Shown: positions 5,313-32,981 of the stretch, piece after piece | Layout of the letters: each line of letters begins with the position of its first letter | How positions within the stretch are numbered: the first letter of the stretch is position 1 | Assembly (NCBI GenBank): GCA_023515725.1 | Contig: JALDTO010000192.1 | Location: 1-64,000, forward strand | Length of the DNA: 64,000 nucleotides | Direction: 5' to 3' | Source of the DNA: Amoeboaphelidium protococcarum X5 | Taxonomy: Eukaryota > Fungi > Aphelidiomycota | Made by a program: the position numbers and the translations under genes | The notes under the pieces: generated by a model | Told to the model about the DNA's origin: nothing | Database searches by the model: none | What the model saw: the letters and a program-made list of their open reading frames with translations, nothing else

Positions 5313-5557
5313 ACTTCCTACTTATAATGAAATGTATTTACTATGATACCTAAAAAGAGCGCAGAGAATAGCCAATGCATCAAGATCGATCAAGTGAACC
5401 GAAGTGATGACCTGTCCTCCCATGGATCATGCCGACATTGTTTCAACTTTAGCGTTGTCCATTGAGCAGTAAAGAGATGACATAAAGTGTAAGTATAGTA
5501 AGTAAAGTATATGAGTATAAGAAGTACTACGCGCGTTTATTATCACTGTAAATACCA

Positions 5558-7549
5558 TCATTAATTTTAGTAAATTGAGTAAGATGGCCCGGAGGTTGTG
5601 TTAAGATTGAGAGGGATTGTAATGGCCATCGATGTCATGCTGGTGTTTTACGACTGCGCGGCATACTGCTGTTACCAACGTACCTACTTCAACTTGCTGT
5701 GCCTTCTCTTCAACAAGACGCATACTGTCACAGTAATAACCACAGCGAGGAAAGCAAATGAGCCCGCAATTACGTAAATTAACACCAAGTTAGCAGTAGG
5801 AGCGCCTGGTGCATCCACGTTTAACAAGCGATCTGACGAGCTTAACGTTGAGTGTGATTGACTGCTGTAAAGTACAGTACCAACATTAAATTAAACAGAT
5901 TATCCAGAAGATACAAGACTACTAGGTGTAGATTGTATTAGAATAGACTGCAATAAGCTAGTAGTTGCTAACACGGCAGTTTTAAAGATAGAACTGACAG
6001 AGTTAATCGACGCGACAGAAGTACCGCTATTATTTAGGAGACTGAGCGTTGAGTTGCCGAAAGATGTCGTCTATATTAGGCTGGCTGCAATGGAGACTTA
6101 AGTAGTCGCTGTGTATTCTGCGATAGAGAAACTACTAGTTATGCCATCTTCAGTGCCTATAATGGTTGTAAGTGCAGATGTAGAAGATGGTGATGTGGTG
6201 GTAGAAGTCCTCTGAGATTTAACAACAGAGCTAATTGGTAGCTTTTGATCCGGCAGCTTGATGATTACGGGCCCAGACTGTTCCGCACCTGGTAGATACT
6301 CTTGTCCAGACACCAAAAGATATGGCCATTGCGAGCCAGCCACCACAGAAAAATTGAAGTCCTACTATTGGTAATAGTCCAACAGTGTATAGTTTTATGA
6401 ATACGTCAATACTGTAGCTTAAGTCTTGTCACCTAATTCGGTAGAGACCGCCAAATACCCATACACATAATAAATCTCTTATATCTAGTTGTAGTATAAG
6501 CCATATGATACAGAATCTTGCCACTCAGCCTAAATTTCATCAGCAGCAGCAGCAGCAAATCGAGTCAAAATTTAAACTGTAGTATTCTGGTAGAACCATC
6601 GCCCCATTATGAAAAGACCAGATCCACCATTCTCCGCTGGCAGAGTTGAAATAGACATTCCAGCAAATACTACACTCTTATCCTTCTCATTCAAAATCGC
6701 ACCTAGAGCAGCGTCAGATCCACCAAAAGAATAACTAAAGCCGCTTGTAAGTCCTATAGAGGAGTAATTACTACAATGTAGCTAATCAAAATACAGTAAA
6801 TTTGGTCGTGCTTTTTAACCAACCAACAGCATTGTATTCTGTTACGTGAACAGAATTTAACGCAAATTACCATCCTTAATGTAAGTGTAGACACTTATCG
6901 AGGAATTCACTGGATTGATAACAGCAAGTGAGGAAGACCGATTTTACGAATTGTAAAATGTTGAATAAGTGGCGAGGAGCATCTTGGCTTTATCATCGTA
7001 CAACAATAAAGTAGTATATACACTAGTTACACTGTCACACCACTCAAATCCTACACAGGGAAGGTCACTTATCATCTTCACCAAAGACCCATTACGCGAG
7101 AAGAGTGCAATGGCAGAATCAACTATAATACCGGGCCTCTTAATGACTGATTCAACCTCATCGGACGTAAAGGAGAAAGCCATTGCAATCTGATTCTTAT
7201 CTTTAAATACAGCAAGACCACGCTAAAAGAAATTATCCAGCACTTGACGCCTGACTACAGGCCCGTAATCTCTACCAGGCCCGCCAAACTGCTTCGCCCA
7301 ATATATAGTAGAATTGCGCAAATCAACTTTAATCAACAAAGCATCCAAACCTCCATAACTTATTTAATTTAAGCAAGAGCCATAGCTTTCACCAGCAATA
7401 TAAGCGATATTATCATCGAAAGGATCAACAACCATCTCGCCGACATTCACATTTCCCAAATTGTAGTATGTGATCTGCGTGTAGTTGAGCGAAAGCACCA
7501 CGCGCATTAGACTTAGTAATCCGGCTAATCTCATGATTTCAATGTCCAT
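5558..7549 (-). CDS. Type I membrane/surface protein: signal peptide, beta-propeller-like ectodomain, Ser/Thr stalk, TM helix; about 663 aa
   Basis: Hydrophobic N-terminus; GGLDALLIKVD...WAKQFGGPGRDYG motif; S/T-rich stalk; TM LVLIYVIAGSFAFLAVVITVTVCVLL followed by KRRHSK; TGA 5558-5560. Confidence 0.75.
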
Positions 7550-7735
7550 TGATTAATAAGCTACACGAGTTGCGATTTAAATAGTCAGGTCAGTCATTCC
7601 ACTTTAAAGGATGACGACAAAAGGATGTGGAATATTCCGTTGTTGAATCGAGAATCTATTATTAGAACACAAATCATATCAATCATTATCACTATGCTAA
7701 CATCATCATTGTATTCATTTTAACACGACTAACGA

Positions 7736-18592: not shown

Positions 18593-20551
18593 ATGGGCGA
18601 GTAAGAAATGACTGGATAATTTCAGCATTTGGTAAAGAAGCTTCATTAGCTGTTCTTCATTGACAGTTCCGCAGCACAGTCAGAGTCTGCGACGAAAAAT
18701 CATGAGCATACTTAGAATGTTATTTACGATGGTAAATCTAGTTGGAAGTCGCTGTTCTAATTCATTGGTCCGTCTTATATGATTGCTGTGGGATATATGG
18801 ATCCGGGTAATTGGTCAACTGATATTAGTGCTGGTGCCAAATTTGGCTATACTCATCTATGCATCGTTCTTCTGACATCTCTAATGGCGATGCTGTTCCA
18901 ATCACATTGCGTCCTGTTGGGAGTTGTGACAAGGCGTGATTTGGCTTAGCAGTGCAAGTTGGTGTTTAATCGGCCTGTTAATATTGTTCTATATATGCTT
19001 ACAGAGATTGCCATCATGGCTACTGATCTGGCGGAAGTCATTGGTAGTGCCATTGCGTTGAATCTTTTATTTGGATTACCACTCGAATGGGGAGTTCTTA
19101 TCACAGCTCTAGATGTTCTTTTAATTCTTCGCTGGTGGGGATCATAGTATTAACGAATATATGAAGGAGTTATTTTCGTGCTTGTCCTTGTTGTGGGCAT
19201 TTGTTTTATGGCATAGTTGTTTTATACTAAACCTGACTTTATATCCGTACTAACAGGCTTTAATCCTTTGAATATTTTATAAATGTTCACTCAGACTGAA
19301 CGTCTTTTAATTGCTATCGGAATAATGGGAGCCACAGTTATGCCTCATAATTTATACTTGCACTCGTCAATATGCTAGAATAAACATTTGGTTCACGAAG
19401 ATTCTATAAGTGGTGATGGTGATGACGAATAGATTATATATGGCGTGGATGACATTGAGCTAGATGTGCAGACTTCAGTTAATGAGACGAATCCTTCTCC
19501 GACGAGAAGTACCTTTTAAGACTCAGTGCGACTCACTTTGAGATATGCAACATTTGACATGGTGGTTGCCCTCATATTTGCGTTTATAGTTAATGCCACC
19601 ATTCTCGTAGTCGGAGCATCTGCCTTTTATTCTAATTCCGATGTTCGGAGTGATCCATCGCAGGTTGCTGAACTTTAAGATGCTCACGCTAGTTTGTAAA
19701 AATACATTGGAAGTGGTGCAGCGGCCTTGTTCGCTATTGCTCTTCTAGCCAGCGGTCAAAGTAGTACAATAACTGGTACAATTGCCGGTCAGGTGGTGAT
19801 GAATGGATTTCTGAATCTGAGATTGAAGCCTGTGATAAGGCGATTATTTACTAGAGTGTGCGCTATACTACCTGCTCTCATAACTGTGCTTCTATACGGA
19901 TAGAATGGACTGAATCGACTCTTGGTGATATCTCAGGTGATATTGAGTTGTCAGCTACCATTTGCTCTCATTCCCCTTAATCTCTTTGTTAGCAGTAAGG
20001 AAATTATGGGTGGTGGTCGTTCATTGCGGTTAAGTAGCAGATTTAGCTGGCTATTTAGAATATTAGCAAAGAGTGAACAATATCAAAATCTAGAACAAGA
20101 TAATAATCCTCATACACTGTCTAATAATCAAGAATATGCCGTATCCGGTTGCATGCTCTATCTCTCATGGGTTGTCACTGCTATAGTCGTTATTGTCAAC
20201 ATGTGTCTCGTAATTTCTGCCATTTTCATTTAATAATAATAATAATATTTCCTCTAATGGTCTTTTCGTAACATTTTATTCTACTTCACTTTACACGTTA
20301 TACTTCTCGAATAGTTGGAGCGGCTTGCGATAAGGTTCAACTTAAGCTTTGATTGGTCGAGTGGCGACTTCTACTGTTTCAGCCTCGTCTTTACTTTGCA
20401 AAGCGCTCTATTGATCGCCTATTGGCCCGTCTAATATTACATCACGGTCATTACGTTGTAGTGTACAATTTTGGTCATATTCCGTTCGCTCACTATAATT
20501 TTGTCATAAGAAGAGATTCTAAAGTGGAATAATGAGCGGAAATCAATCTGA
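18593..20551 (+). CDS. NRAMP (SMF-like) divalent metal transporter; homology ends near 20230 and the true stop is uncertain
   Basis: [56 protein letters not shown]; the last TM is followed by (TAA)5 and the first in-frame TGA is at 20549-20551. Confidence 0.85.
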
Positions 20552-21830
20552 ATAGAATTTGAATAATTCAAACAGTTTTGAACATTTCATCAATGTGGGT
20601 AGTAGTGCAGTTGAGTAATCTCCGCCTTCGCAGCGTCGCAAGAGTCCTGCCATGGTTTCATTCTCTGAGGATGCGCTGAGTCCTGAGAGTGGTCAGTCGA
20701 GTGGTGCTAAACAGAATAAGTCCGGGTCGTCTAAGAGTGGTAACAAGAAGCAGAATAGTGCCAAGGACCTGCTGAAGAAGCCATTCAGTTTCGTCAATGC
20801 CGTGACTGAGGTGACCGGTGTCAATTCTGTGATGAGAACAACGCGTGGTGTGCTGAGTGATGTCACTAATGCCGCCTTGAATACTTTCATTGGCGGATCA
20901 GCATCTGACACTGACGTCTAATCTGTGCAGCAGGCTCGCAAGTTGGCTAATGACATATTTAATGCTTTACTTGAGCCTGGAAAGTCGGAGGTGACAATTG
21001 ATAATTTCGTCCCGTATTTTCCATCTCCAGATGAAGCACGCAAGGCTTTCAGACTATTTGACACTAATGGGAACGGTGATATCGAGAGGGAGGAGATGAA
21101 GACTGCGATTGAACAGTTTTTAAATGAGAAGAAGGCTATTGAGACTGGTGTTGCAGATTTGGGAACTGTAGTTGGCCGTTTGGATAGTTTTCTGCTGGTG
21201 ATTACGTTTATTGTGGTGCTGTTCATATGGCTGAGCGTGTTTGGTGTTGCGCTCACTCAGTATCTGTTGACTTTTGGTTCCCTCATCATCCTGTCCGGTG
21301 TTGTGATTGGTAACAGTGCCAAGACCGTGGTGGAGAATATCCTCTTCCTATTCGTGTTGCACCCATTTGATGTAGGTGACAAGATTGTTGTTGATGGAGA
21401 GTTGTATACTGTCAAGAATATCGCCCTTAACAGTACCACCCTGGTTCATGTTGAAGGTAAATTAGCCAAAATTCCGAATGCCATCCTTCAAACTAAGGTT
21501 ATCTATAACTACAGAAGAAGTCCAAATTAGTCTGAGACATTCACTTTATATGCAGAATCTGACAAGGTGGACAAATTGATAGCGCAGTTGGAGGATGAGG
21601 TGACTAAATTTGTTAGAAGGAACGCCAGAGATTATCTGCCCACCGTATCTGTTCATCTAGACAATAACAATGGATTCGCTGATGGAAAGTTGAAGGTTCT
21701 ATTGCGAATTAATTATAAGGGAAACTTTTAGGATATTGATGTTACTCGAAAGCGTCACAACAAGGCAGTGATGGCTTTACGTGAAATTTTGAGTTCTTCA
21801 GCTCTGAAAGATCAAGTCAAGACTGGATGA
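20532..21830 (+). CDS. MscS-like mechanosensitive channel, C-terminal half (EF-hand plus MscS core), 432 aa
   Basis: ARKLANDIF; EF-hand FDTNGNGDIEREE; FLFVLHPFDVGDKIVVDG; IPNAILQTKVIYNYRRS; TGA 21828-21830. Confidence 0.9.
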
Positions 21831-21937
21831 TTATCAATGACATAAATTTACTACATATTTAAAGATTAAATTAAAGTATCTTTGTGTCAATCTCCTATGA
21901 ACGATTATTATTATATTGTTACAGAAACACTTCATTT

Positions 21938-22951
21938 TCATTATGAAGTTCTTCTCTCTCTGCCAGCCTGATTTAGGTACTTCAATTCCATAGACTCTTC
22001 CTGTGGTGATAAGTTTTGAGCAGCGCGTTAATCATTAGCCTGAGTATTCGCGCTACCTCTGATCGCTGGCGTAGGTACGTATGTCCAGAACGGCTTAATT
22101 TAAGTAGGTGAACTATTTTCACTGTTTCCACCCTGTCTACCTTGCTTTCTGCGCTTACGAACAGCAACGTACAATCTCTCCACGACATAGTCGGAGAACT
22201 TGGCTTTAACGATACGCTCAGTATAAGCAGTTCTATGGAATCCCACGGCTATGGACTAGAGTAGAAACTTCTCAATAGCCAATGCCACAAGACCAATGAT
22301 CAGACAGTTCAAAACGCTAGCCAGAGTTCCTTTATAATCGTCACGAGATCCTCTAATGATCAAGACTTCCATAATAGCATTCAACACTACACTGGCAATA
22401 ACCAGAGCCAGATAGTGTCGTAGCACTTAAAAGTACTCAAGTCGAGGCTTGGCCAACTGAGCGTAGTACTTACCCAACAGCAAGTCAATCAACCGCAACA
22501 CAATGACAGGTACAGTCAACCATAACCACGACGATAGAAAGTACGCTGCCCAGGTACATGTCAGAGTGATGAACCAGAACATCATTGGTCTCCCACCAAT
22601 GTTCGCATTTGACTAAAGGTCCAGAAAAGCTACACTTTTGTCATCGATCAGGAATAGATAGTCACATACGGCTGGGATCATCAGAATGACACCGCCAAAC
22701 ACAACATAAACCAGAGTGCGCGCCAAAGGAGGCCAGTTGTTGAACCAGTTGAGAAATCTCAGGAATCTAGGCAACTTCAGACCTTCTTCGCCATCATCCT
22801 GAGACATTGCAGATTCATACATGTCATTCCCAACTTCATCGTATGCAGATTGGTCCAACTTTGTAGATTATTATTATTACTATTGCTACTACTACTGTTG
22901 ATTTAACTGATTGAGATTATCTCCAGATTCTTTCGCCTTCACTCGGGACAT
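21938..22951 (-). CDS. MscS-like (Msy1/Msy2-type) channel, N-terminal multi-TM half, 337 aa
   Basis: Several TM helices ending in AIEKFLLQSIAVGFHRTAYTERI, the motif that precedes the linker/EF-hand in fungal and plant MscS-like proteins; polyQ N-terminus; TGA 21938-21940. Confidence 0.8.
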
Positions 22952-26743: not shown

Positions 26744-27020
26744 TATTTTATATCACGAAATTATTTTTTTTTAATTGAAGGAAAGCAAGTGTGTGATTTA
26801 AACTCTCCTTTGGTAAAAGAGCAATCGGGCATGAAATAGTTGAGTGTGAAGAAGAATGTGGGGGAGATAGAAACGAACACGATAACAACCACGGTACGAA
26901 ACGATGGTATCTCACAGGAGCATCAAGGAAAATCACATGTATCAACAATGAAAGGGGTGAAGAAGTATGATTGCAAGAACGCAGGATGAATACTGGGGTA
27001 CCTTACTACTCTTAAGCCAA

Positions 27021-27091
27021 ATGTCGCTACAAAATTGTCGCTAACACGATCAAACGAATGTCGCTGACAATGTTGTTGACAATGTCGCTAC
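27021..27091. repeat. Array of 4-5 (A/T)TGTCGCT motifs, candidate transposase-binding subterminal repeats
   Basis: atgtcgctac, ttgtcgctaac, atgtcgctgac, (atgttgttgac), atgtcgctac. Confidence 0.7.
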
Positions 27092-27313
27092 ATAAACTGC
27101 GCGTGCGACCAACACTGTTTCAGAAATATCAGCTTCAGTATCAGATATACAGTTGCCTATATCTGACTCTGATATCAGCATTCAAAATAAAAAGTGCCGT
27201 GAGAAGCCTAAAAGAAAGTCGTAGTCAAAATATAGTATGATTTAATTTCCAATCTCAATACTTATTTCATTACTTTTGTAGAGCGAACTTCACTGTTAAG
27301 AGAGATTTTGAGA

Positions 27314-30300
27314 ATGAACACTACCAATGGAATGTCCATCAGCAATTATGTCCCTCCTCCTGGTGCAAGGAAGATCAAGAGGCAGAGAGAAGACGCAGAA
27401 AATGCACCGATCCATCCTGGTAAGACTTGGAAGTGCCCGATATGTAAAAATCTTCATTTCCCATCTAATAAGAAGCCGCACACTAAATTTTGTTTGGAAT
27501 AGTTAAAGAAGAACAACAGTATCGCAGGTTCCGCGAATACTTTGTCAAGTTGGCTGACTGGAGCATCCTTACAATCAGTGGACTCTTTCGCTAATGTACC
27601 AGTTCATCAATCCGCGTCTGATCAGACGCCTGAAACAAATGATATTAATGCTCATCATGATACTACCTCCTCAGTCGAAAATGATGATCAAGTTAATGCC
27701 ACGTTAGTGATTGAGTAGAAAGATTAGAATTGGAGAAGTCATCCCTCCACCGCATTTATAGTCAAGTACACTGATGAGATTGACTACGCCATTAAAGGAA
27801 CAGGTTCGCGCGGCTATCAATGCAATGCAACGTCGTCAAGGTGTCATGGTGTCTGCGATTGCAAGCCGCTGAATCCTCTGTCCTGGCGTGATATCTGGAT
27901 TTATCCGCCTAATCCTTTATTAGTCTCAGATTATATGGAGAGCTAGGATTTTGTGAAGGAGAAAGTTATATTCTGGACGCCAGAAGTGTTTTTCCATCAT
28001 CTTGGTGTTCGCCACATGCCTTGTCCAGTTCATGGCGTTGTGGATGGTCACGTTAAGGTAGCAGGCTGGTCAGCAGTAGGGCCTCGAAAAGTAATAGGCA
28101 TTGGTCAGTCGTATTACATCATGTTCAAGAGGTACAAATGCAATCTGTGTCACTGTGGTACTGGTGGCAGGACTGGTAAGGAGTTTCGTGGAATAGATCC
28201 AGATACTTTGCAGCATCTTCCTCCTCATGTTTAGCAATAGTTGCCGTGTACGGTGATTGACAACACGATCCTGGACAACTAATTGATTTAATTAATGGAT
28301 AGGATGATCATGCGAGGAGTCTCTTTTAATGAGTTTGTAAAGATGTTGGATGAGCTGTTCAACAACTAGCATTAATCAAGACATCTTGCCTATCTGTCCG
28401 CATCAACATTTGTTAGAAGGAACCCATAGAAGACTTTAATGTTTTAAGCTTTGCCTGCACTGATTGACCCATTTCCAGAATTCAGCGACAAAGATTAGTA
28501 TAACGTATCCATTCCATCCACTACTGTTTTAAAGAAATTCTATTATAAGAGCCAAATGGATGTGTATGATCTGAAGAACGCCGCTGTCGCGCAAGTTACT
28601 GGCAAAGTTTTGAGCGGTGATCACACTTTCAAAGCAGCCAAGGTGCCTGTGTCTAAGTCTCAGTAGATATTTGAGGGATTATACTCCTTGGTGAATGAGT
28701 ATGGCCAAGTAGCTGGATTCTGGCTTGTGCCAAACAAAAGTCTGAAAGAGTTGACTGGTGAATTTGAAGTCTTGAAGCAGCGCTATGCGGCCAAAGATGA
28801 AGAGGGTCCTCAGGCTTTCTTCACAGATCTCTGCTGCACTGAAAGAGCATTTCTCTCTGATATGTTTGAATCTCTGTCAGCTACTGGATAAGGATAGCGA
28901 GTACTCTTGGATATATTTCATTTCATGGAGCGGTATCCTGTTAAGAAGAAACATCCTCTATACTCTCTCTTTGCCTCCAACCTCCGCGACGCGATATTCA
29001 TCTGTTCTGAAGAAGACATGCAAGATGTGAAGTCAGTATTACAGCAGCGTGGAGTATCAGATAAGTAAATGGATCAGATCAAGAGAAGCTATCTATTGCG
29101 TAATGGTAAAGTGAGAAGATTTGTTCCACCTGCGGATATTTTGTCGAATAGAATTGATCAGGTGGTCTAAATGTTCAGAGCGGTTAACAGTGAGTTCATT
29201 GATGATCAAGTAATGAAACATCACGAGCGTAATCTGAAGCACGCCAAAGATGGCTGTTTATCAGATCCTCCTGGTGTTGACATGTACTTGCAATTAAAGC
29301 CTGGAGATGATGGATCTTTTAAGTAGTTCAAGTGTTTTAGAGGTACCAGCCAATAAGAAGGATATCACATGATGTTGTACAATGCGTTTTAAGCAAAGTC
29401 TATCTCTCCTGAGCTATATAATGTTATGCTCATGGACTTTGTCTACAGAAGAAATCAAGATGCGGCACTGACCTGTGGGCTGACTCCGGATTTTCATATT
29501 TACAACCCACTAGTGCTGAGCTAAATTAAGCAGTTGTATGTCGACAATGCGAAATACTTCAAGTGTCCTGTTTTTGAGAATCTGACCATTCCACAGGTAT
29601 CTGAATTCTCAAAATCTGTTAAATTTGGCTGTAGTAAGTATTTGGGCAAATCTCTTGATCTAAAGAACATTTCTGACTAGTAGCTGATGATGGAATGCGA
29701 AGGTGGCTTTGATGAAGAACTGATTGATGCACTGGCCGATCCAGTTGAAGTTGATTTGACTGTTATTGATATGGATTAGAGTGATATATCTACTGAGCCC
29801 ATCAAGCTGAACTCTGATGATATGATCTCTAAGTTTGCATTCAATGTCATATCACGTCCCGTCTCCTCCCAAAAAGAGCTCATCTTATTCATGTCACTGT
29901 TTGAACAATATTGCACCAAGAAAAACGGTGATGATAAGTAAGTAGATTATGAGTAAATGGCTGATCGATGGAATTTTCTGGTTTATAACAAGATTGCCGC
30001 CTGCTCAAATTAGTCTGAAGTTGATGATTTGTTATCAGAATACTCTTTTAAAGCACCAAGCCATTTGAAGAGTTTTGAAGATATTGTGGAACGTAAGTTG
30101 GCATGCAAATACGCGATTGATCCATTTAAGGCCCAGTTCAGACAGCTATAAAATCATTTGACTGACCCAACAGCATTGCATATTCCGTTCGAAATTCCGT
30201 AGTTGCATTAGGTGTCTACTGAGTAAACTGTCTAAGTAGTTGAACATGTATCTGTAGAAACACAGACTTCATTGAACAATTTGAGCTGCATCTGTCCTGC

Positions 30301-30877
30301 TACTCAGTCTGTTTAGAGTGTCAATGATTTGCTTGCTACTGCAGATTAGGATATTTAGAGATTAGTTGATAGTATAGACGATGCTTACTTCACCAATCTG
30401 GATATGGGCACTTTGTTCAATCCAGTTTTGGGTCTGCCTGATGGTGATGATATTCCTAGAGTTGACAATTTTGGAGAGAATGTAGACATCAACGAACAGC
30501 CGACCTTTAACTAATTAACTTATCATACCGTCGATATCATTTAAGCTGATACTGGGCCTGTCACAATGACTGAGGCTGTCAATTTGACTGAACTGCTGCG
30601 TTAGAGATTCGGCGACGACGTGTTGACACCTGAAAACGGATTTGTCAATGAAGAAGAGTTGGACAGTAATTTGAGAAGCGAATCAGTGAAACAAGTCTGC
30701 AAAATCTGCTGGAAGCCAAGATTGATGGCTGATTCCAATTAATGTACTGAAGGCCATTCTTCCAAAAGATGCGATGCATCAAGTTAGTTAGACGATTCTT
30801 TGTTGTAAATGCGTACAAGTCTCTATAAAAAGTTCAGAAAGCGTGTAGAAAGAGAGAGAAAGTTGAAATAGACGTGA
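27314..30877 (+). CDS. DDE-type transposase with Cys/His clusters, 1187 aa, uninterrupted under TAR=Gln
   Basis: LSGDHTFK (D1), VNEYGQV, FFTDLCC (D2), LLDIFHFMER (DxxH), GCLSDPPGV, FRGTSQQEGYH (E); terminal CxxC-H clusters; translated end to end to TGA 30875-30877. Confidence 0.8.
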
Positions 30878-30960
30878 TTTTATGAACTGATTGAGTAATT
30901 GAGTGGATATGATCGCAGATCTTCGGTTTCTTCTTACTCATCCCTTGAAATCCGTATAAA

Positions 30961-30993
30961 ATATCGCAACCGACCTGCGGTCGGCAGCGATAT
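30961..30993. repeat. GC-rich hairpin near the right end of the transposon
   Basis: atatcgc-aa-ccgacc-tgc-ggtcgg-ca-gcgatat: 7-bp and 6-bp stems. Confidence 0.8.
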
Positions 30994-31563
30994 AATTTTT
31001 TCCCGACTAGGCGTATAACCATATAATTTGCCGAATACTGTTGTTGAAAGAATCACGTCTACACAATTAGATCCAAGATAGAATCAAGGTCTGTGAATAA
31101 CAATATACGTTTTCAACTTTAATACTAAATAGCAACTGTTTAGATACTGGTTTCCAAGCACTAACAGTGAGCTAATTTTTGTCAAGCTAAACAACGCTCG
31201 TCATCATCGTCATCATCATTATCAAGAAGATTGCTTTGAAACACCGAAAGTCTAAGAGGACAACAACGACGGCGACGGCAAAGAAGAATAGAAACAGAAA
31301 CAAACAGGCGCTTGATCTCTCTCTCCACTCGCTCACAGTTGAAAGCACAGTAAATTTGGGAGAAAGAACGAACAGTCCGAATTGGTTTCGAAACTTGAAA
31401 CGATTGTTATTTATTCTGGCTGATATATTTGTACACATCCTGTCTGCTATTAGCACAATTAGAGTTTGTACCTATCAGTTCAAGGAGTTGAGTGTATACT
31501 TTGTAATTGACAATTTTTGATTTATATTACAACATATCAGTCAGTAATTTTGAGTATTGAAAA

Positions 31564-32631
31564 ATGGGAATTTGTATTAGTAAAGACTCTGCTGAGCAGG
31601 CTGCAAAGAATGCAGAAATTGAAAAGGATCTGAAGGCGTAGAAGGCTGCAATGAAGAATGAGGTCAAGATGTTGCTCCTTGGTGCCGGTGAATCTGGCAA
31701 GTCGACTATTCTTAAATAGATGCAGCTGATTCATGGTAGTGGTTACAATGCTTAGGAGAGAGAATCGTACAAGGAAATCATTTTCTCCAATGTTTCACAG
31801 TCCATGAAGGTGATCCTGGAAGCTATGGAGGTGCTCAAAATTGAATTGTCTGGTGAGTCTAACAAGAAGCACGCCTCTGTGATCCTTGAGCTGCCTCCTT
31901 AGCTGGAAGGTACTGAGCAGATGCCAAAGGAGATTGCTGACGCTATCAAGGCTCTCTGGTCTGATGCTGGAGTATAGAAGGCATTCGCTAGAAAGAAGGA
32001 GTATCAGCTGAATGACTCTGCCAAGTACTACTTTGACAATATTGACCGTATTTGTGCTGCAGGCTATGCTCCTTCTGATCAGGATATTCTGCATAGTCGT
32101 GTCAAGACTACGGGTATCATTGAGACCACCTTTAAAATCGATCAGTTGATTTACCGTATGTTTGACGTGGGTGGACAACGTTCTGAGCGTAAGAAGTGGA
32201 TTCACTGCTTTGAAAATGTGACTGCAGTCATCTTTCTGGCTGCCATTTCTGAGTATGACCAGACTCTGATTGAAGATGAGACTGTGAATCGTATCCAGGA
32301 GGCTTTGACTCTGTTTGACTCTATTTGCAACTCTAAATGGTTTGCCAATACCAGTATGATTCTCTTTTTGAACAAGATTGATTTGTTCAAAGAGAAATTG
32401 ACCAAGAGTCCGCTGACTGACTACTTTTCAGACTTTTCTGGTGGTGACAGTTATGAGTAGGCCAGTGCGTTCCTTCTGAATAAGTTTGTCGAGTTGAACA
32501 AGTCTCCGCAAACCAAGCAGATTTATGCTCACTTTACCTGTGCTACTGACACTGCTTAAATCAAGTTTGTCATGGCTGCAGTGACCGATATTATCATCTA
32601 GAAAAATCTGAGAGATACTGGTCTGATGTGA
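31564..32631 (+). CDS. Heterotrimeric G protein alpha subunit (Gi-like), 355 aa
   Basis: MGIC N-terminus; [17 protein letters not shown]; RVKTTGI; [12 protein letters not shown]; FLNKID; TCATDT; TGA 32629-32631. Confidence 0.96.
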
Positions 32632-32981
32632 GCGTCCCTCATCTTTTAATGTGTGGTGGGATTGATAGCTTTATGAGGTTATTACTTGTGATTGAATTAG
32701 TGAATAAAGTTGGTATAATTTTAACTTGATACTGTTGATTAGGCGAGAGTTAAACGCTACAAAAATTGGCCGTGTTTTCTATGAAGGTTTCCTCCTTCGC
32801 TGTATTTTCAGCCAGATTTGACGTTCAAAATGTCGTCCCGTTTCAAAACCATTTTGAGGCGTCAAACATTGTTTCTCTCCCTGTTATGGTGGCGTGATCT
32901 CCGTTCCATTACTGTACTTCTTTGTTTGTATCTCAGTGTTTGAGTATTGCGATATTGCTATTGCTAAAAAAAATTGTTAAA

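Follow-up and report, generated by a model that had tools for sequence, protein, structure and literature searches.

The DNA analyzed here (the window) is a 64,000-nucleotide stretch of Amoeboaphelidium protococcarum X5, a parasite of algae, taken from a 23.6-Mb assembly. Between 20532 and 22951 it carries two small, intron-free genes that face each other, each encoding one part of an MscS-like mechanosensitive channel. The plus-strand gene (20532-21830; 432 codons plus TGA), which we call the C-half, encodes the distal part of the linker between transmembrane helices 4 and 5 (TM4 and TM5), an EF-hand, TM5, TM6, and the cytoplasmic MscS domains. The minus-strand gene (21938-22951; 337 codons plus TGA), the N-half, encodes TM1-TM4 and the proximal linker helix. 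Both are intact open reading frames (ORFs), of 432 and 337 aa, each ending at its own TGA, and the two stops are separated by a 107-bp spacer (21831-21937). An earlier sequence-only reading of this DNA had described this layout, and its coordinates and motifs all proved correct against the ORFs and Pfam matches. Judged from gene content and gene order, the locus is one MscS-like channel gene cut into two convergent genes by a DNA inversion of about 1.4 kb.

Long open frames emerge in this DNA only if TAA and TAG count as sense codons and TGA is the sole stop, and in-frame TAA/TAG codons are present in the N-half and C-half alike. Three of the four TAA/TAG differences between the window copy and a second copy of the locus, on contig C233 of the same assembly, are changes to CAA or CAG, which confirms that TAA and TAG are decoded as glutamine. 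Both ORFs were translated with genetic code 6 (TAA/TAG = Gln), and homology searches used the stop-free pieces between TAA/TAG codons.

The C-half begins with a new N-terminal head, residues 1-81 (20532-20774), that is rich in Ser, Gln, and Asn and has no clear counterpart in unsplit orthologues, where the alignment contains only linker-type sequence. It is followed by a conserved segment of the cytoplasmic linker domain, KKPFSFVNAVTEVTG...DTDV (20775-20918), that aligns to P0009, P0007, P0008, and P0002-P0006; in relatives this segment comes after the N-half part within one chain. The EF-hand (21033-21113, with its loop DTNGNGDIEREE at 21060-21095) scores above the cut-off with both PF13405 (29.3 bits) and PF00036 (28.5 bits). 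TM5 (21192-21248; hydropathy 2.9) aligns to TM5 of the orthologues and of MSL10, and the kinked, pore-lining helix TM6a/b (21261-21368; ...VVIGNSAK...LHPF) aligns to TM6a/b of MSL10 (residues 541-580, via an orthologue), FLYC1, and E. coli MscS, with a Val, also hydrophobic, at the position of the MSL10 gate residue F553. The MscS beta-domain PF00924 lies at 21342-21518 and scores 33.3 bits (33.3-35.1 bits for the C-half piece), above the Pfam gathering cut-off of 20.2. The best PDB matches of the C-half are FLYC1 and MSL10, with E values of 2e-27 to 4e-26, and the other sequenced strain has the C-half annotated as a 432-aa protein at one of its two loci.

Hydropathy identifies four hydrophobic helices in the N-half, at residues 84-102, 134-152, 176-194, and 208-226, which together with the AlphaFold2 model define TM1 (22646-22702), TM2 (22496-22552), TM3 (22370-22426), and TM4 (22274-22330), spanning 22274-22702 on the minus strand. 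The AlphaFold2 model is helical over residues 60-270, with a block-mean predicted local distance difference test (pLDDT) of ~65-90, and residues 274-337 fall below a pLDDT of 50 except for residue 288. Directly after TM4 is a conserved helix, EKFLLQSIAVGFHRTAY...ERLY (22169-22273), which is the most conserved N-terminal motif of the family; K228, V236, F238, H239, Y243, R246, and L260 are invariant in alignment A1, and the helix matches the equivalent helix of the paralogues and of MSL10. The C-terminal tail, residues 267-337 (21941-22153), keeps the linker motif KPFWTY and then continues for about 45 lineage-specific residues. The public N-half protein is 336-337 aa long in two strains (336/337 aa at the other strain's two loci) and carries the precomputed Pfam label PF25886 'Msy1'. 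This label and the orthologues served as our reference in place of S. pombe Msy1/Msy2; searches with a local copy of Pfam gave no PF25886 match for the N-half or for P0009.

The MscS beta-domain, the kinked pore helix, and the EF-hand before TM5 are thus all present in the C-half, and the TM1-TM4 module in the N-half. Instead of the single polypeptide of Msy1/MSL10-type channels, the locus has two convergent ORFs, each with its own ATG and TGA, in all four known copies.

Unsplit relatives provide the clearest view of how the two halves fit together. Four PF00924 loci are present in the genome, each as two copies; apart from the split one, all are single ORFs of 791-940 aa that combine N-terminal helices and this post-TM4 motif with a linker, an EF-hand, and the MscS core. 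In the closest of these, paralogue A, the N-half matches residues 51-263 (75 bits) and the C-half residues 450-757 (176 bits). When a 108-aa stop-free piece of the C233 N-half was used as the query of an exhaustive HMMER search, 16 proteins were recovered, among them the 337-aa public protein and, matching at their residues 163-444, full-length relatives with lengths of 673-969 aa. Unsplit orthologues were identified in A. occidentale (KAI3656393, 673 aa), in Paraphelidium tribonemae (transcript-derived, 722 aa), and in a metagenomic aphelid (761 aa); each is encoded unsplit on one strand, and they show 34-40% identity over the alignment. In a MAFFT alignment, the halves tile the orthologues end to end, and the overlap between them is confined to the length-variable TM4-TM5 linker. 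The halves are therefore complementary, as the sequence-only reading had proposed, with the N-half corresponding to the TM1-TM4 part and the C-half to the linker, EF-hand, and MscS part of the unsplit relatives. All 51 of the further relatives, fungal and other, found with the C-terminal part of the orthologue have PF25886 and PF00924 together in a single chain, 730-1118 aa long. A word-based search recovered nothing beyond the query, whether the whole N-half or the whole orthologue was used, and two metagenome scans, one by protein and one by alignment, found no closer relatives carrying the split. No unsplit co-orthologue was found among the four PF00924 loci of the genome; by position, it is the split locus that is orthologous.

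In A. occidentale, the single channel gene is convergent with an Nramp gene, which is followed by an LYR gene. A metagenomic aphelid contig, L020 (ENA ERZ4203368 NODE_577), has the order G-alpha, CTLH, EMP24, channel, Nramp, LYR, one further gene, and carnitine acyltransferase, and all parts of its channel gene are on one strand, interrupted by small introns. Both loci are thus orthologous by neighborhood as well as by sequence, sharing Nramp and LYR with our locus and, in the metagenomic contig, EMP24 and CTLH. In tblastx comparisons, collinearity with both outgroup loci holds for LYR, Nramp, and the N-half, and in the metagenomic contig, the closer outgroup, it extends to EMP24, CTLH, and the acyltransferase. 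Only 20709-21791 in the window, corresponding to the C-half, is inverted relative to both. The synteny thus bears out an in-place inversion of the 3' half of the gene, in which the C-half segment alone was flipped between Nramp and the N-half. Given that the outgroup loci and the orthologues are all single genes and that the C-half alone is flipped, the unsplit state is ancestral. The comparison places the flip on the A. protococcarum branch, before the three lineages of the locus described below diverged (synonymous divergence, dS, ~0.15-0.32). We considered inverted repeats as mediators of the flip and rejected them, since none flank the flipped segment and only TAA-type simple repeats are present there. 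In L020 the channel gene (5588-7678) is called as three ORFs because of small introns that change the frame, with a short masked run of Ns just upstream (5380-5430); the GC content of this contig is 49%, compared to about 40% here.

The split layout recurs in four assembled loci, two copies in each of two strains. Contig C233 of the same assembly carries the same convergent layout (G000:C233:647894-650669), collinear and ~91% identical over the whole 2.8 kb, and in the other sequenced strain (GCA_023515745.1) both loci, L016 and L017, are split in the same way. The four loci form three sequence lineages: one comprises the C233 copy and a nearly identical locus of the other strain (dS 0-0.02), and the window copy and that strain's second locus each represent a further, distinct lineage (dS 0.15-0.32). 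The strains therefore share one copy lineage and have a second that differs between them, an arrangement consistent with hybrid or duplicated genomes whose second parents differ. Genome-wide duplications have been described in A. protococcarum, in strains X5 and FD95 (PMC10608142). Short assembly contigs of two samples, the probable source sample and another of the same organism, bridge the stop-to-stop junction. Run X5 covers both genes and not the spacers, which may only reflect divergence of the spacers past the 80% threshold.

Both halves are under strong purifying selection, including their new termini, at a level like that of the unsplit paralogues. Between the window copy and C233, the ratio of non-synonymous to synonymous substitution rates (dN/dS) is 0.045 for the C-half and 0.069 for the N-half after its poly-Gln run. 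In the C-half head (codons 1-130) it is 0.046, and in the N-half tail (last 71 codons) 0.041, compared to more than 1.9 in the other two frames of each. The N-half tail has 12 synonymous changes and 2 non-synonymous ones (dN/dS 0.04), and the last codon before its TGA differs between the copies as TAA>CAA. Codons 1-85 of the C-half have 8 synonymous and 3 non-synonymous differences, of which the first three (codons 5, 18, and 29) are synonymous. The C-half ATG and the N-half TGA are kept in 4/4 copies. In the informative pairwise comparisons among the three lineages, the N-half gives dN/dS values of 0.024-0.079 and the C-half values of 0.036-0.059, compared to 0.023-0.034 for unsplit paralogues in the same genome and 0.094 for the neighboring Nramp. 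Neither half is evolving neutrally (0.02-0.08), in keeping with the proposal that both were retained.

The sequence around the two genes is much less conserved. The spacer between the stops (21831-21937) would contain the right-hand junction of the inversion as well as the 3' end of each transcript, and the bin over it (21794-21893) has the lowest identity between the copies, 69% with indels, whereas most of the flanking coding sequence is 90-97% identical. A stretch before the C-half (20296-20394) is 79% identical, also with indels. Within this otherwise diverged intergenic region, a 76-nt block (20448-20523) immediately upstream of the C-half ATG shows no difference between the window and C233 copies and contains CTATAAT about 35 nt ahead of the ATG. 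The block has no Rfam match and no unusual fold (z-score -0.66), and it is unique to the two loci; on these grounds we rejected a structured RNA or a repeat. It probably serves as the new core promoter or 5' untranslated region of the C-half. Perfect runs of at least 60 nt are common between the copies (42 in the aligned blocks searched, within the first 45 kb of the window), and since such runs are frequent in coding DNA here, the block is only mildly unusual.

The upstream neighbor, Nramp, has its conserved part at 18779-20236 on the plus strand, marks the left side of the inverted segment, and is collinear by tblastx with both outgroup loci. Nramp and the C-half have the same orientation and are about 300 bp apart. 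The Nramp protein ends in ...AIFI followed by five TAA codons, the TAA run lying at ~20232-20246. In the window copy, the first TGA in the Nramp frame is then at 20549-20551, within the C-half ORF; in the C233 copy, a 2-bp indel in the TAA run leads into a different downstream frame with an early TGA. Given that the frames diverge past the TAA run, translation must end at or near this run in the window copy, although TAA is read as Gln elsewhere. Two further differences were noted downstream of the split locus. About 4 kb of the window copy (26995-31033) has no counterpart in C233, where the alignment resumes directly beyond it, so this is a copy-specific insertion or deletion; the sequence-only reading had called it a transposon. 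The G-alpha gene (31539-32633) is inverted relative to L020, which is otherwise collinear here, and this makes it a second kb-scale, single-gene inversion within 18 kb.

The closest solved relatives of the protein are Arabidopsis MSL10 and Venus flytrap FLYC1 (PDB 8tdj, 8jwe, and 7n5d). The locus shares with Msy1, MSL10, and FLYC1 the order of TM1-TM4 and the post-TM4 helix, the cytoplasmic linker domain, TM5, the kinked TM6, the beta-domain, and the C-terminal domain, and it shares with the fungal Msy1/2 type an EF-hand in the cytoplasmic loop before TM5. Known Msy1/MSL10-type members are one chain of ~670-1100 aa, whereas here the break falls within the TM4-TM5 linker and two convergent genes encode the parts. 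In the orthologue, the post-TM4 helix shows a weak alignment to about residues 310-342 of MSL10, and the EF-hand region aligns from residue 420 onwards, placing the cut within the cytoplasmic linker domain that joins TM4 to TM5. By cryo-electron microscopy, linker residues 335-386 and 397-431 of Arabidopsis MSL10 are unresolved, and the linker is fully disordered in lipid; TM3-TM6 and the C-terminal domain form the well-resolved core, and TM1-TM2 are weakly resolved (PMC10560256).

By analogy, the two-gene sodium channel of aphids is the closest precedent for a two-subunit channel split by inversion. It is encoded by two oppositely oriented genes (DI-II and DIII-IV), split in a cytoplasmic linker, and the arrangement has been attributed to an inversion; the two halves are taken to assemble into one channel (PMC4954994). 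Common to both cases are a single ancestral gene, a cut in a cytoplasmic linker, and halves that lie nearby in opposite orientation and were both retained. The differences are that the aphid channel belongs to another family and forms a 1+1 pseudo-tetramer, compared to the 7+7 assembly expected here, and that its halves are ~23 kb apart and are backed by expression and RNA interference data, whereas the evidence here is genomic.

We consider it likely that the locus arose by a lineage-specific fission of an Msy1/MSL10-type channel through the in-place ~1.4-kb inversion, and that the halves re-associate into one channel, so that a channel once made of one protein is now probably built from two. 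The ancestor was one gene convergent with Nramp, encoding TM1-TM4, a variable linker, the EF-hand, TM5-TM6, and the MscS cytoplasmic domain, and the flipped segment extended from the middle of the linker to just beyond the stop codon. The N-half retained the original promoter and ATG and now runs into a new TGA, and the C-half, now head-to-tail behind Nramp, starts at a new ATG. Because the cut would fall in a flexible cytoplasmic loop and leave four helices on one half and two on the other, with the ends of both in the cytoplasm, each half could insert with its native topology alone. The halves would then re-associate non-covalently, with TM4 packed against TM5 and the linker domain against the cytoplasmic cage, and the heptameric channel would be rebuilt from seven N-subunits and seven C-subunits. 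The conserved new termini may help the halves find each other.

The alternatives that would do away with two separately translated genes are all unlikely. Misassembly, or a minor somatic variant, has the weakest case, and we give it practically no weight: the genomic evidence for the junction comes from short contigs, but the same layout is present at four independently assembled loci in two strains, contigs of two samples bridge the 107-bp junction, and each half has acquired a conserved start or stop of its own, along with a terminus under constraint. The arrangement is therefore not an assembly error. Split genes whose transcripts are joined by trans-splicing are known in Giardia, and the sequence-only reading had offered as its lesser alternative that the two pre-mRNAs are trans-spliced here into one mRNA for a normal single-chain channel, with TGTAG at 20457-20461 as the possible acceptor. 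This acceptor lies within the perfectly conserved 76-nt block, and a frame is open from 20415 into the C-half. The synonymous bias, however, extends right up to the N-half TGA, with the TAA>CAA change in the last codon, and starts again from codon 5 of the C-half, which indicates that these stretches are translated and not intronic. With the ATG and TGA kept in every copy, no extended complementarity between the N-half 3' region and the C-half 5' region (18 nt at 78% at best), and perfect runs as long as 60 nt or more being common between the copies, we find trans-splicing extremely improbable. It is also very improbable that the C-half is a 3' extension of Nramp giving an Nramp-EF-hand-MscS fusion, despite the short distance and shared orientation of the two genes, the open Nramp frame of window-type copies, and a public gene model that joins them. 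Indels between the copies right after the end of Nramp, the 2-bp one among them, mean that the downstream frame is not conserved, the gapped stretch at 20296-20394 shares only 79% identity, and in the C233-type copy, for which the annotation gives two genes (573 and 432 aa), a TGA precedes the C-half ATG by 216 bp. The joined model, at 966 aa, is probably a gene-prediction artefact.

The halves may instead have gone separate ways, with the C-half (TM5-TM6 and the cage) acting as a minimal channel alone and the N-half taking on another role or becoming a loose regulator. Every MscS-core element is kept in the C-half, the outer helices TM1-TM2 are weakly resolved in MSL10, and the C-half shows a modest rate asymmetry with one outgroup, all of which favor this idea. 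Working in the other direction, the N-half is constrained to the degree seen in the unsplit paralogues, and this extends to the post-TM4 helix, which in relatives makes contact with the core, and TM3-TM4, which belong to the well-resolved core of MSL10, are on the N-half. To our knowledge, a pore-less four-helix fragment has no stand-alone function. On balance we think such a divergence unlikely; continued assembly with the C-half best accounts for the strong conservation of an N-half that has no pore and carries TM3-TM4 of the resolved core. Several observations weigh against re-association of two separate products. In a relative-rate test, the C-half is faster with one outgroup (68 vs 36 unique changes), a modest asymmetry that allows for some change of function, although the other outgroup gives 50 vs 46. 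A Foldseek search with the N-half model places MSL10 chains at ranks 2, 3, 11, and 38, with weak, non-significant E values of 0.4-2.3. The 966-aa public model joins the C-half to Nramp rather than leaving it as a gene of its own, and none of the 15 sequencing runs found to hold the locus is recorded as RNA, those aligned to it being short assembly contigs.

Within the fission and re-association that we favor, the sensor might even be dissociable, with a C-half heptamer forming the pore and cage and the N-half serving as a separate subunit whose amount or presence sets the tension sensitivity. We put this forward tentatively and regard it as doubtful; if true, the parasite could retune the channel between its walled cyst, amoeboid zoospore, and intracellular plasmodium through the ratio of the two products. 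The locus also offers a clean and datable case of gene fission through a kb-scale inversion. For the family, what the outer helices and the TM4-TM5 linker do in MSL10/FLYC1-type gating is not settled, and the natural cut site would provide a design for a split channel. The locus can be seen as a natural experiment on how an MscS-like channel is built, one in which the TM1-TM4 module and the pore and cage module appear to be separable and yet both worth keeping.

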